From Macrostomum lignano (taxonomy: Eukaryota): DNA of 64,000 nucleotides. A model generated the notes under the pieces. It was not told the DNA's origin. It saw only the letters and a program-made list of their open reading frames with translations, and did not search any database. This document shows, piece after piece, positions 30,146-36,100 of this stretch. The translations under genes were made by a program, and so were the position numbers. The stretch lies in contig NIVC01000199.1 in assembly GCA_002269645.1 (NCBI GenBank), forward strand, positions 62,001 through 126,000, written 5' to 3'. The stretch's first letter is position 1. Each line of letters opens with the position of its first letter.

Positions 30146-33100
30146 ATGGCCTCGATGCGAATTGCCGCTTGGATACTGTGCTGCTTACTGAGCAGTCTGC
30201 CTCCACAGGCTCTGTCAATGACCTTTGTTAAACAGCAGGTTAATCGGCAGGTGAGTCGGTTCTTATAGTTATCCAGTTAGTAATCTTTAATTATGCATTA
30301 ATTGTTGTCATCCAAGTTGAGAATTGACATTTGGCGTCACAGATACATGTAGTTATCTGTGCATTTGGCAGCAGTAGATTTGGTATTGCCATAGACATTA
30401 GCAGACTTAATGGCAACCAACTTGACACTTTGGCCATAGACATCAGCACAAAAAAGGATGCCAATAACAACCTCTCTCATACACACACTCCTTTTCAGTT
30501 TTCAATATTGCTATTGAGTATTAGAGTTCATTAAAATCATGTTCAAACATTGACTTTTGATGCAATAAAAATCGGAATTATCAACTTCATGGCTTTTTTC
30601 CGTTTAGTTTGTACTGCATGTCCGTTTATTTGGATTCGTTCACTTGGCTGACAAAAGCAAGACGTTAAACTCTAGCTACTCCTTTTGTACTCTGTTTTCC
30701 AGCTCTGCACGTATATAATGATAACACTAACTCATTAGACCTGCCACAATTGGGTTAGATGTGCAACCGACAGCTCAGCCGCAGCTATTGCGCGGCGTAT
30801 CTGAAGGCTGCGTACGGCTGTTCAGTCCAAGGACTGGGGGGTCGCCACACACAGCCTCAATTACCCCAGCTAATGCTGGCACCCATTTTACAGCTGGGTG
30901 AACTGAAGCAATGCAGAGTTAAGCGTCTTGCTCAAGGACACAAATTATTCCAATGGGATTGGAAATCGAACCCCCGACTTTCAATTTATTCTAGAGTCCG
31001 ACGCTCTAGCCACTAGACCACAACAACCCGTTAAGGTTGCACGTACAACTCAACAGAAAATCCTTGCGTCCCTCATTCAGAGAAGGACACAATTACACTC
31101 CGGTTTCTTAAAGCTGAGCTGGACGCCTTTGTAGGATTGTGTATGCGACGTTCCTTACCGGTTTCAAGCTCATTTCCAATAAAATTCGAGCGTACATTGC
31201 ATATCCTACTTCAGCTGTCTCCATGCAGCAAACTTTCTCACCACAACTCTCCGCAGGTGCTGCTGATACACCGGTCCAGCCTCAGCAGGGACAATGGTTC
31301 CCTTCCCATCGCCAATCTGACTCTGTACTTCTTCCCCGAGACAGCCTACAACATCCGCGAGGAGGAAACCGTGAACGTGTCCTTCACCTACTCGCTGCAG
31401 AGCGCCGTCGACTTGAACGCGACCTTCCAGTTGGAGGAGGATCGAGTGGCTCGGTTGTTGAACTCCAACTTCCTTCTGGTCGCCAACTCGTCCGTTGATG
31501 AGGCGCTGACAGCGGCTGCTGCTGCAGGGGCTGGGAATTCTACAGTCAGTTGGAACGGGACCTACTCTGGTCAGCTGCCCAATACTGTGCAGCTTCTGGG
31601 TGAGTGGAGGTCGGGTCATGAAGTCTACATTCATGACTTGTGGACAAGGAGAAAGTCAGGGTCGCTGTACACCCTGTTTGAGCGCGTGCCTGCTTAAGTA
31701 TCCATGTGGGTGCTTGACTGCTTGCCAGCTCGATCCTCAGGGGGTCCGAAGCCTAGTGGCCAAGCGCGGCGCTCCTATGTGCCATGATCCGCCCCTTTGC
31801 GTAGCTTGGCCTCTGGATCCGCCCCTTTGCGTAGCTTGGCCCCTGGATCCGCCCCTTTGCGTAGCTTGGCCTCTGGATCCGCCCCTTTGCGTAGCTTGGC
31901 CCCTGGATCTAAGTAGTGCCGTAGCCCAGTGTTGCAGTGCGTCGCTCTGATGTGCCAGCGTCTCAGGCTCGATTCCAAGTACTGTCGCATTAATTTGGGG
32001 CTGAATTGGAATCTCGGCTTGGCTCTGCTTGTGCAATTAACGGGCTTAAGGTACAACCCCAAGGCACACTGAAGTGTACATTCCTAACGATAAATAAAGT
32101 TAGGACCGCTGTACACTCCTGTGTGCCTGCTCAGGGGAGTCGGCGAAATGGGCAGTAGTGCCTCTCGCTGGTTGCGACAATTTCGCTTAAAGTACGCCAA
32201 GCTTAAACTGCCTGTAAGCTTACTGATAAAAAGCAAATCTGTTCACCCTTTTAAACAATAAAGACAAAGCTTATCAGGAAAGTAAATGTAATTAAAAACA
32301 GGATAAATCATTTATTGTAGTGTCAGGATGTAACAGTCACTAGGATAAATACTTCAACTTGTATGACAGTTGCTGTCAGTAGAAAAACGGCAGATACTGT
32401 TTATTCTGTTAGGTCTGTCAGGTGTACTTTCATCCGACCAGCGCGGCTAGCCGTAGTACTTGTAGATCTTCTCCTCCTGCTGCTGTTGCGCAAACTCGTG
32501 CAGTGTGCGGCGTAGTCGCTGCATTTCCTCTTGCGACTTTCCTCCCAGCCTGTAGACCCGCTTCTTCTTGCACCTGCCGGAGTCCTGGGCAGCGAAGTAC
32601 CCGTCTGTGCCAGCTTTGTTGGCCCGGCGTACCCTGCCGTGTGGGGAGATTTTAAAGCCTTGTTGGATTCTAATACCAGTTGATCAGATCCCCATTCATA
32701 ATCTCAGATCCCCATTCATAATCTCAGATACCCATTGATAATCTCAAATCCCCATTCATGATCACAGATCCTCATTCATAATCTCAGATCCCCATTCATG
32801 ATCTAAGATCCCCATTCATGATCTCAAATCCCCATTCATGATCTAAGATCCCTATTCATGATCTCAAATCCCCATTCATTATCTAAGATCCCTATTCATG
32901 ATCTAAGATCCCTACTCATAATCTCAGATCCCCATTCATAATCTCAGATCCCCATTCATAATCTCAGATCCCCATTCATAATCTCAGATCCCCATTCATG
33001 ATCTAAGATCCCCATTCATAATCTCAGATCCCCATTCATAATCTCAGATCCCCATTCATAATCTCAGATCCCCATTCATGATCTAAGATCTCCATTCATT

Positions 33101-36100
33101 ATCTAAGATCCCCATTCATAATCTCAGATCCCCATTCATAATCTCAGATCCCCAATCATAATCTCAGATCCCTATTCATAATCTCAGATCCCCATTCATA
33201 ATCTCAGATCCCTATTCATAATCTCAGATCCCCATTCATAATCTCAGATCCCTATTCATAATCTCAGATCCCCATTAACATTCTCAGATCCTCATTAATA
33301 GTCTCAGATTCTCATTAATGATCTCAGATCCCCATCAGGCAGTTCAGATCCCCATCAGGCAGCTCAGAACTTCATCAGGCAGCTCAGGTCCCCATCAGGC
33401 AGCTCAGATCCCCATCAGGGAATCCAGCGTCGCACCGCATGGCCCTGGCGAAGGTCTCGTATTTCCCAGTCCGGTTGCCCTTGATCCTCTGCCACAGCAG
33501 CGCCATGGTCTCCGTGTCCAGCGCCTTGAAGAAGCCGCTCTCGCCGCTACAGCGTCGGCCCAGGCTGTCGCAGAAAGCGAGAATGCCGGCCAGACTGGCG
33601 GGAAAGTGGACGGCGAGGCCGTTCAGTGCGCCCTGGGTGATGAGCAGCACGATGAGAATGACTTCGTGAACTCGAACTCTCGATGAAAGACCGTCTGGCC
33701 GGTTGCTGCGGCTCTCTGGGAATGTTTAGTAGATTGTTTGGTAGATTGTTTGGTAGATTGTTTGGTAGATTGTTTGGTAGATTGGTAGATTGATAAATCA
33801 TTTGATAGATTGGTAGATTTTAGATAAATTGGTGGCTTCTTTAATAGAACGGTAGATTTTTTGGGACATTTTTTATCTGATTGGTAGATTGGTAGATTGC
33901 TTGGTAGATTGGTAGATTGTTTGGTAGATTGGTAGATTGTTTGGTAGATTAGTAGATTAGTAGATTGTTAGATAGATTAGTAGATTGTTTGGTAGATTGG
34001 TAGATTGTTTGGTAGATTGGTAGATTGTTTGGTAGATTGGTAGATTGTTTGGTAGATTATATAGTAGATTGTTTGGTAGATTGGTAGATTGTTTGGTAGA
34101 TTATATAGTAGATTGTTTGGTAGATTAGTAGATTAGTAGATAGATTGGTAGCTTCTTTGGTAGATTTTTTGGTAGACTGGTAACTTTAGAGCTTAGCGGT
34201 AAACGCGTCTGACTCTCAGGCCCAGGGCACAGAGAGTGTACATGCTTGATGATTAGACAGTCAGAGCTGTACACTCTGTGTGAGCGTGTGTGCCTGCGTA
34301 CAGTGTCCCTATTTAAACTACTCAAACGAAAAGTATCATCTTTCCTACCGCCGCTCTCACCAATGACCAATTTGATGAAGTCTGACATCTCTTTGATCTC
34401 GTGCTCGCGGCTGTTTGCCGGATAGACCAGAGTCTGTTGTTGCTGCTGCGGTGGTGGCGGCGGCAGCGGCGGTGGCAGCTGCCCCTGATACCCCTGATAG
34501 TGCCAAGGTTCACCCAAAAATGGCTCGGGCTCAGGCGCCTGCGGCGGCGCCGGAGCGGCAATTTCGTTACAGTTGGGTGGCTCGAGTTCGGAAAAATCAA
34601 TGATATTCCAGTCATGAAACTCGCTGGAATAGTCCAGTTTCTGGTTGGGCCATAGACAGTTTCTGCGGAATGGGTTGTAGCAGCGGCTCGTAATTAGTCT
34701 ATGGTGTCTCTCCACTCCATACGCTATCCACTCCATAGAGTAGGGTAATGTCGCATCTACAGTATCCATTCCATAGAGTAGGGTAATGTCGCATCTACAG
34801 TATCCACTCTATAGAGTAGGGTAATGTCGCATCTACAGTATCCACTCCATAGAGTAGGGTAATGTCGCATCTACAGTATCCACTCCATAGAGTAGGGTAA
34901 TGTCGCATCTACAGTATCCATTCCATAGAGTAGGGTAATGTCGCATCTACAGTATCCACTCTATAGAGTAGGGTAATGTCGCATCTACAGTATCCACTCC
35001 ATAGAGTAGGGTAATGTCGCATCTACAGTATCCACTCCATAGAGTAGGGTAATGTCGCATCTACAGTATCGACTCTATAGAGTAGGGTAATGTCGCATCT
35101 ACAGTATCCACTCCATAGAGTAGGGTAATGTCGCATCTACAGTATCCACTCCATAGAGTAGGGTAATGTCGCATCTACAGTATCGACTCCATAGAGTAGG
35201 GTAATGTCGCATCTACAGTATCCACTCCATAGAGTAGGGTAATGTCGCATCTACAGTATCCACTCTATAGAGTAGGGTAATGTCGCATCTACAGTATCGA
35301 CTCCATAGAGTAGGGTAATGTCGCATCTACAGTATCCACTCCATAGAGTAGGGTAATGTCGCATCTACAGTATCCACTCCATAGAGTAGGGTAATGTCGC
35401 ATCTACAGTATCCACTCCATAGAGTAGGGTAATGTCGCATCTACAGTATCCACTCTATAGAGTAGGGTAATGTCGCATCTACAGTATCCACTCCATAGAG
35501 TAGGGTAATGTCGCATCTACAGTATCCACTCCATAGAGTAGGGTAATGTCGCATCTACAGTATCCACTCCATAGAGTAGGGTAATGTCGCATCTACAGTA
35601 TCGACTCCATAGAGTAGGGTAATGTCGCATCTACAGTATCCACTCCATAGAGTAGGGTAATGTCGCATCTACAGTATCCACTCCATAGAGTAGGGTAATG
35701 TCGCATCTACAGTATCCACTCTATAGAGTAGGGTAATGTCGCATCTACAGTATCCACTCTATAGAGTAGGGTAATGTCGCATCTACAGTATCCACTCTAT
35801 AGAGTAGGGTAATGTCGCATCTACAGTATCCACTCCATAGAGTAGGGTAATGTCGCATCTACAGTATCCATTCCATAGAGTAGGGTAATGTCGCATCTAC
35901 AGTATCCATTCCATAGAGTAGGGTAATGTCGCATCTATAGTATCCACTCCATAGAGTAGGGTAATGTCGCATCTACAGTATCCACTCTATAGAGTAGGGT
36001 AATGTCGCATCTACAGTATCCACTCCATAGAGTAGGGTAATGTCACATCTACAGTATCCACTCCATAGAGTAGGGTAATGTCGCATCTACTGTATCCACT

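Follow-up and report, generated by a model that had tools for sequence, protein, structure and literature searches.

A stretch of 64,000 nucleotides (nt) of the Macrostomum lignano genome (assembly GCA_002269645.1, contig NIVC01000199.1, positions 62,001 to 126,000 of the forward strand), called the window hereafter, carries a gene whose protein contains a strongly remodelled domain of the ETS family. Our best explanation, to which as a whole we give a probability of about 80%, is that the locus is a real and intact gene of three exons on the minus strand, coding at least from about 34663 down to 32447, and that it belongs to an expansion which would have descended from the ESE/EHF-like branch of ETS genes, without the PNT domain. 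All coordinates are positions within the window, the gene is read on the minus strand, residues of the domain are numbered from the R of REHEI at 34409 (R1), and a slash marks a splice junction. The open reading frame (ORF), its exons and introns, and the elements of the domain lie as follows.

34361..34769, minus strand: exon 1, coding part; open frame between 34769 and the donor, with an uncertain 5′ limit
33716..34360, minus strand: intron 1, GT..AG, phase 1; splice sites read from the sequence
33436..33715, minus strand: exon 2, with acceptor ttcccag/AG and donor CG/GTGCGA; from translation, Pfam, alignments and AlphaFold
33671-33636, minus strand: ETS helix 1, VHEVILIVLLIT, in exon 2, with a hydrophobic insertion downstream
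33581-33570, minus strand: strand beta1 in exon 2, followed by a hairpin insertion
33533-33516, minus strand: strand beta2 in exon 2
33515-33480, minus strand: helix 2 in exon 2
from 33461, minus strand: greater part of recognition helix 3, at the end of exon 2; the remainder is in exon 3
32634..33435, minus strand: intron 2, GT..AG, phase 2, splitting the codon of the second Arg in helix 3; acceptor cggcag/G
32447..32633, minus strand: exon 3, coding part; from translation, tblastn and AlphaFold
32557-32546, minus strand: strand beta4, VYRL, in exon 3
32542-32453, minus strand: conserved C-terminal helix in exon 3, downstream of VYRL
32449-32447, minus strand: stop codon TAG, from ORF reading
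32400..32405, minus strand: AATAAA hexamer resembling a poly(A) signal (TTTATT on the plus strand), about 42 nt past the stop

How do these pieces join into one gene? Exon 1, which ends at the donor GTCATTG/GTGAGA (final base 34361, read from the sequence), codes first for an N-terminal region that is acidic, rich in Pro and Gln and carries the motif DWNIIDFSELEPP, and then for the first conserved helix REHEIKEMSDFIKLVI (from 34409). Its phase matches that of exon 2 exactly, giving ...REHEIKEMSDFIKLVI-E-SRSNRPDG..., and intron 1 stands at the same position (..VI/E, phase 1) in the paralogues P0004 and P0003, where P numbers are our handles for related proteins. Exon 2 starts with a linker upstream of ETS helix 1 and ends in the recognition helix, where the second Arg codon of ARAMR is split CG/G by the phase-2 intron; exon 3, from 32633, holds the end of helix 3 (R/VRR), a lengthened loop between helix 3 and beta3, and beta3 with the wing (GRCKKKR). 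By tblastn, residues 1-107 of P0001 fall on 34661-34338 and residues 193-255 on 32635-32450. An earlier reading of this DNA, made without database searches (the sequence-only reading), had already placed the intron within the codon of the second Arg, and this is confirmed; the intron has GT-AG ends and is of phase 2. Its extent for the gene, 32540-33715 with VYRL as the terminus, has to be corrected on both sides: an upstream exon ends at 34361, and the reading frame continues past VYRL, adding ...GGKSQEEMQRLRRTLHEFAQQQQEEKIYKYYG and a conserved C-terminal helix before the TAG at 32449-32447.

The ETS nature of the domain was examined by searches of increasing sensitivity. With HMMER, the window protein matches the Pfam Ets profile (PF00178) with E=1.3e-4 and 22.6 bits over profile positions 24-61 of 81, its close paralogues score 14-21 bits, and the top matches of phmmer against PDB are ELF1, ELF2, ELF3, EHF and ELF5. 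A family-only profile made of five sequences and searched against 1.84 billion representative proteins gave 23 hits and reaches P0012 (E=1.8e-9), P0013 (9e-9), P0015 (3e-6) and P0021 (2e-4), whose own Pfam Ets scores are 57.1 (positions 3-80 of 81), 27.4, 49.0 and 47.1 bits, respectively; P0012, P0015 and P0021 match the Pfam Ets profile almost from end to end. The next hits of the same search, at E about 7e-4, are EHF-like proteins of bivalves that have PNT domains. Against PDB, the five best matches of a family-only profile made of eight sequences are Elf-1 (E=0.0019), Elf-3 (E=0.0021), Elf-2, EHF and ELK1, and two non-ETS chains, one HMG-box and one Helicobacter chimera, lie lower at E 0.2-0.5. 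Profile-profile comparison by hhalign, whose query was the same eight-sequence family alignment, including no canonical ETS protein, gives 96.4% probability (E=1.3e-9, 70 columns) against ESE/EHF-class ETS and 48.6% (E=1.8e-4) against the SPDEF class. By this comparison, which covered these two classes, and by the first Foldseek match, Elf3, the ETS domain of the window is nearer to the ESE class than to the SPDEF class.

The position of intron 2 is evidence of ETS ancestry that is independent of residue similarity. The second Arg codon is likewise split by a phase-2 intron in the EHF-like gene P0034 of the annelid Ridgeia (..LSRSM/RFCR) and in the fish EHF gene P0097 (..LSRAM/RYYY), and because both position and phase are the same, it is an old intron of the EHF-like branch. 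In a mite SPDEF-like gene, the only outgroup checked, the whole ETS domain lies in one exon and so lacks this intron. The domain that ESE-class hits carry in addition, SAM_PNT (PF02198), was matched neither in the window protein nor in 10 relatives even at E<=1-10. PROSITE-style ETS patterns were dropped as uninformative because a bona fide fish EHF failed them too. Since the Pfam score is below the threshold, the PNT domain is missing and two sets of hallmark residues are lost, the gene is filed as a variant within the ETS superfamily and not as a regular ESE member. Still, the profile searches, the profile-profile and transitive comparisons, the position of the intron and the predicted fold all agree with the diverged ETS domain that the sequence-only reading had proposed, and ETS matches came from profile searches as well as from structure prediction.

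What has been kept of the ETS domain, and what has been changed? In an alignment of 140 sequences, bona fide ETS domains included, F79, W91, K95, R107 and R110 are invariant (140/140, the window protein among them), and the window protein retains the Phe of beta2, the Trp and Lys of helix 2 and both Arg residues of helix 3. Its segments RVRVHEVILIVLL, GFFKALD, TETMALLWQRIK, YETFARAMRVRR and KKKRVYRL, all contained in the spliced peptide, align on helix 1, beta2, helix 2, helix 3 and beta4 of ETS domains. The Trp of helix 1 is replaced by H33, the Trp position of beta1 is F64, and V111-R112-R113 stand in place of the Tyr triplet YYY after the second Arg of the recognition helix; the substitution of the helix-1 Trp, the retained residues of helices 2 and 3 and the loss of Tyr had all been recognized by eye. 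His replaces the helix-1 Trp in every Macrostomum-type member, those passing the Pfam threshold included. Compared with canonical ETS domains, the loops are longer by about 11 residues between helix 1 and beta1, by 7 in the hairpin between beta1 and beta2, and by about 8 between helix 3 and beta4, so that the single hydrophobic insertion of about 20 amino acids (aa) seen earlier is in fact the first two of these, of which the one between helix 1 and beta1 is indeed hydrophobic. Only in the subclade of the window gene is the insertion between helix 1 and beta1 six residues longer and uncharged; the 19-residue Kyte-Doolittle mean of VILIVLLITQGALNGLAVH (residues 35-53, 33662-33606) is 1.95 there against 0.67 in the P0004 subclade. 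Residues 35-53 exceed the classical transmembrane threshold in the window subclade, and charged residues stand there in the other subclades.

AlphaFold2 on the 140-sequence alignment gives a model with a predicted local distance difference test (pLDDT) score of 82.9 and a predicted template modelling (pTM) score of 0.81. The model contains helices at residues 32-43 (helix 1), 84-95 (helix 2, exactly TETMALLWQRIK) and 102-111 (helix 3, YETFARAMRV) and strands at 62-65 (beta1), 78-81 (beta2) and 136-139 (VYRL), and residues 31-40 reach a pLDDT of 94. The elements stand in the order H1-b1-b2-H2-H3-b4, in keeping with the winged helix-turn-helix of ETS domains. Two further helices, at residues 2-17 and 141-170, are confidently predicted to flank the domain. 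A Foldseek search of PDB gave 80 matches at E<=10, and all 50 of the 50 matches listed are ETS domains; among the matches listed, template modelling (TM) scores normalised by target length reach at most 0.78 (PDEF). The flanking helices were also compared with the autoinhibitory modules of ETS1 and ERG, for which no claim is made, the query-normalised Foldseek TM-score being at most 0.48 among the matches listed.

It is useful to set the window protein beside named systems one after another. With the ESE proteins (ELF3/EHF/ELF5) it shares the best profile-profile match, Elf3 as the top Foldseek match, the helix-3 motif RAMR and the ..SRAM/R.. intron; it differs from them by the absence of PNT/SAM, His for the helix-1 Trp, VRR against FCR or YYY, the sub-threshold Pfam score, the additional 11 residues between helix 1 and beta1 and 7 in the following hairpin, and the family-specific helices flanking the domain on its N- and C-terminal sides. 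The spiralian EHF-like proteins compared (Ruditapes philippinarum XP_060569976.1, Pinctada imbricata KAK3102971.1 and Ridgeia piscesae NP493_597g00024) likewise lack YYY (RFCR) and have GYFA after helix 3 and a wing with a KK motif that is 3 residues longer, and they share with the window protein ..F/LG.KA after beta4 (here F or L); from helix 3 to beta4 the window protein is longer than them by another 4 residues. Because the spiralian EHF-like proteins have RFCR for RYYY, the GYFA strand and the three-residue longer wing, part of the remodelling predates Macrostomum. Thus the extended wing and the loss of Tyr described in the sequence-only reading are present, and they are not wholly new in this lineage. 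Novel features of the Macrostomum clade are His for Trp, the absence of PNT and the two flanking helices. At the Ridgeia piscesae locus (JAODUO010000596.1, our L004, 1-6350), a gene with PNT and ETS and a PNT-only model lie upstream of the EHF-like ETS exons, which may mean that ESE-like genes are clustered at this place in the annelid or that one gene model has been split.

The less diverged genes of Macrostomum, BOX15_Mlig006668g2 (P0012) and P0015 and P0021, both found only on Logan contigs, resemble the window gene in MIHQFLLKLL, the KGN turn, FAR..R and the KKK.Y wing, and differ from it by short canonical loops, a beta1 Trp that is kept, and Pfam Ets scores of 47-57 bits that pass the threshold. 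These three proteins bridge the gap from the window family to canonical ETS proteins. The paralogues on NIVC01001310.1 have, like the window gene, three coding exons, both introns and an identical TFARAMRVRR, and are 49-52% identical in the domain; they differ by an insertion between helix 1 and beta1 that is 6 residues shorter and charged, by longer N-terminal regions and by short introns. For a residue other than Tyr after the second Arg there are precedents in PU.1/SPI and SPDEF, SPDEF-class sequences having R-Q-Y-Y and SPI an Asn at this position, but both keep the helix-1 Trp and at least one Tyr, unlike the window protein.

Relatives of the whole protein have so far been found in one lineage only. 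In a collection of 5.8 billion proteins, the spliced protein retrieves only proteins of Macrostomum lignano: P0001, named 'ETS domain-containing protein' in UniRef, has an identity of 93% over the whole protein and of 98% within the domain (83% in exon 1 and 95-98% in exons 2-3); P0003, P0004 and P0006 are 44-49% identical to the window protein; and P0002 and P0007 are frameshifted models. In the profile search of 1.84 billion proteins, the clade with His for Trp consists only of Macrostomum lignano entries and Logan contigs. The claim of a lineage-specific factor is thus supported as far as databases show, the clade having been found so far only in what appear to be Macrostomum-type sequences. 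The search for a family of paralogues that had been proposed found it within M. lignano itself. P0003 (BOX15_Mlig028334g1) and P0004 (Mlig007295g1) lie about 8 kb apart on NIVC01001310.1, and all copies on this contig have both introns at the positions and phases of the window gene. At least four ETS-like members stand within about 13 kb there (about 325.6-339.1 kb; our L001 and L002): a copy resembling P0019, which is oriented the other way, P0003, a diverged copy that lacks annotation (L001 3366-3575), and P0004. Such a cluster points to expansion through tandem duplication. In the 64-kb window, on the other hand, no second ETS-like copy was found by tblastn, and the window copy is solitary.

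Members outside the M. lignano entries give some idea of the age of the family. P0005 is an intron-less ORF of 627 nt on a short-read contig that starts with Illumina adapter sequence, and is read as a spliced cDNA; 71% of synonymous sites are different between it and the M. lignano relative closest to it. P0005, P0010, P0013, P0015 and P0021 are present on Logan contigs only, and their 90% clusters contain no M. lignano protein. Probably, these Logan-only members come from other species, and the family may be older than M. lignano. UniProt already names several of the paralogues 'ETS domain-containing protein' automatically, and the literature library searched contains no paper on this family.

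Some other names in UniRef do not fit. P0008, with 149 aa comprising ETS-like exons 2-3 only, is called 'Transposase', P0019 'DDE_Tnp_1_7 domain-containing', and P0018 'PIPK domain-containing', although Pfam gives only a weak Ets match for P0018; these names are probably artefacts of naming or of gene models. The 'Transposase' and 'DDE_Tnp_1_7' names raised the idea that an ETS-like exon had been captured by a transposon. It was rejected, as 0 of the 10 long window ORFs scanned match a transposase and P0008 contains ETS-like exons only. The window is ordinary gene-bearing DNA with nothing pointing to a transposon context. Neighbours on the plus strand are an Elongin A gene (Elongin_A and TFIIS/Med26 domain; 16150-17820), a multi-exon gene for an EFTUD2/Snu114-like GTPase (21368 to about 28000) and the C-terminus of a kinase whose GTPase-binding region is of the ACK type (48327-50056); on the minus strand lies a gene for an alpha/beta hydrolase (52710-53975).

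In the window gene, intron 1 is nearly filled by a minisatellite with units of 12/20 bp (33723-34176) and intron 2 by one with 20-bp units (32684-33419, from Tandem Repeats Finder), while their counterparts in the paralogues are about 80-95 bp long without minisatellites (L001 6626-6720 and 6986-7067), so that the minisatellites inflate both introns about 7-10-fold relative to the paralogues. A third array, of 67 copies of a 38-bp unit with 97% identity (34725-37285), starts within the 5′ part of the exon 1 ORF. The window as a whole is extremely rich in long and highly regular minisatellites, with others at 39025-42063, at 24061-25494 and at more than 15 further sites, for example 147 copies of a 21-bp unit at 96% identity. 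The 38-bp array touches the question of where translation starts. The only in-frame ATGs of the exon 1 ORF, at 34769 and 34733, are both in the last unit of this array, and P0001 and P0007, both partial models, start two residues ahead of WPNQ, at the place of a candidate acceptor ttccgcag/A at about 34663. In M. lignano, trans-splicing adds a 35-nt leader with ATG at its end to about 30% of the genes (PMC8629364). A start codon donated by this leader at the acceptor near 34663 was considered and rejected: its ATG would be out of frame, and the gene frame reads TGA across the junction.

Signs of selection were sought in the paralogues. Between their DNA sequences, the proportion of nonsynonymous differences (pN) is 0.10-0.35 against saturated synonymous differences (pS) of 0.65-0.78, in a comparison made outside the window subclade, to which P0001 and P0008 belong, and the paralogues are under purifying selection. 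Mean pairwise identity is highest in helix 3 (0.90), followed by beta1 (0.79) and helix 2 (0.71), and the window copy and P0008, 84% identical to each other, show no difference over the 37 residues that run from GFFKALD to RVRR. The ETS core contains 20 K/R against 8 D/E with an isoelectric point (pI) of 10.5, and the Pro/Gln-rich N-terminal region has a pI of 4.05; paralogues, too, have its acidic-hydrophobic motif DWNIIDFSELEPP at their N-termini.

There are several points which weigh against our explanation and have to be counted openly. The Pfam score of the window protein lies under the gathering score of 26.9 bits (22.6, and 21.2 with the N-terminal region), and two hallmarks of the ETS domain, the helix-1 Trp and the Tyr triplet, are lost. 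AlphaFold2 with the five family sequences only reaches a pLDDT of 45.5, the Foldseek E-values are modest (4.4e-3 for the first match, Elf3 3jtg), and because ETS sequences were in the alignment, the predicted structure is compatible with the ETS fold and not an independent proof of it. Helix 1 and its insertion are unusually hydrophobic, which is odd for a soluble domain; the candidate start codons lie in a repeat array; and no protein or transcript identical to the window copy is found in the 5.8-billion-protein collection or the annotated sets. Could the resemblance to ETS then arise by chance, or the ORF be no gene at all? A sub-threshold score over 38 of 81 profile positions would allow the thought, but it is refuted by the transitive profile matches, the 96.4% of hhalign, the position and phase of the intron and the conserved paralogues under purifying selection, and we regard its probability as negligible. 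The hydrophobic segment might instead be taken, in the window subclade, as a membrane-associated segment made of helix 1 and the insertion, by which the protein is tethered, and the difference of 1.95 from 0.67 is in favor of it. However, helix 1 is needed for the ETS core, the remaining fold is strongly conserved in the subclade, AlphaFold packs residues 32-43 into the domain as helix 1 with the high pLDDT given above, and neither a signal peptide nor a second hydrophobic segment was seen in the protein, so that such tethering is very improbable.

A more serious thought is that the window copy is a young duplicate, silent or decaying, whose ORF is intact only for lack of time. M. lignano has many near-identical duplicates, the related P0002 and P0007 are frameshifted, the introns are swollen by minisatellites, and to these are added the unclear start codon, the missing identical protein or transcript, and an exon 1 that is less similar to P0001 than exons 2-3. 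Yet the frame is open in each of the three exons, the splice sites are canonical GT-AG, an AATAAA is present, all family-invariant residues are kept, and the differences from P0008 spare the core of helices 2 and 3 entirely, while the frameshifts of P0002 and P0007 may be errors of an older long-read assembly; we therefore consider a decaying duplicate unlikely. Also improbable in our judgment is a protein which has kept the ETS fold and lost the specific reading of DNA, and which would serve as a module for protein interactions or compete with canonical ETS proteins. Loss of the helix-1 Trp and of the base-contacting Tyr and the large loop insertions would fit this, and ETS domains are known as protein-interaction surfaces (PMC3901394). 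Nevertheless, helix 3 is the most conserved segment, both its Arg residues and the Trp and Lys of helix 2 are kept, the core is strongly basic, and the protein is not a bare DNA-binding domain but has an activation-like N-terminus. The dominant-negative role, one of the two functions offered by the sequence-only reading, would thus be the less likely alternative because of the frozen recognition helix, the basic core and the activation-like N-terminus.

Most likely, the window protein would be a DNA-binding transcription factor with shifted specificity. To our knowledge, ETS domains are among the most conservative DNA-binding domains of metazoans, and every member characterised belongs to one of four specificity classes. 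The defining property of the ETS family is binding to a GGA(A/T) core, and the four classes are separated by residues in helix 3 and in the loop between helix 3 and beta3 (PMC3901394). As the changes of the window protein sit in just these places, altered specificity, the other function that had been offered, would be plausible. In the mechanism we propose, the protein would act in the nucleus as a sequence-specific DNA-binding transcription factor; its two retained helix-3 Arg residues would enter the major groove and recognise a core containing GG, as those of other ETS domains do; changes at the end of helix 3 and in the loop following it would shift the preference for flanking bases or for the 3′ part of the core; and the acidic N-terminus would serve as an effector region. 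The two family-specific flanking helices could form an added regulatory or dimerising module. It might even be possible, though we hold it rather doubtful, that the His-for-Trp clade, and the window subclade above all, has a DNA specificity beyond the four ETS classes through VRR and the longer loop and wing after helix 3.

An EHF-like gene has multiplied here into at least seven subclades, in which a core Trp and base-contacting Tyr residues have been replaced and loops added while the recognition helix stayed nearly frozen. The expansion serves as a natural experiment on the extent to which the fold and the DNA reading of ETS domains can drift. Pfam thresholds miss such genes, and for tracing ETS ancestry the intron position that they share is useful as an independent marker. 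M. lignano lends itself well to work on regeneration and stem cells, and such factors could be knocked down in it. The point of main interest is whether the frozen and non-canonical TFARAMRVRR reads a new motif: if the specificity is new, the expansion would represent a lineage-specific rewiring of a very conservative family of transcription factors in a model organism of regeneration.

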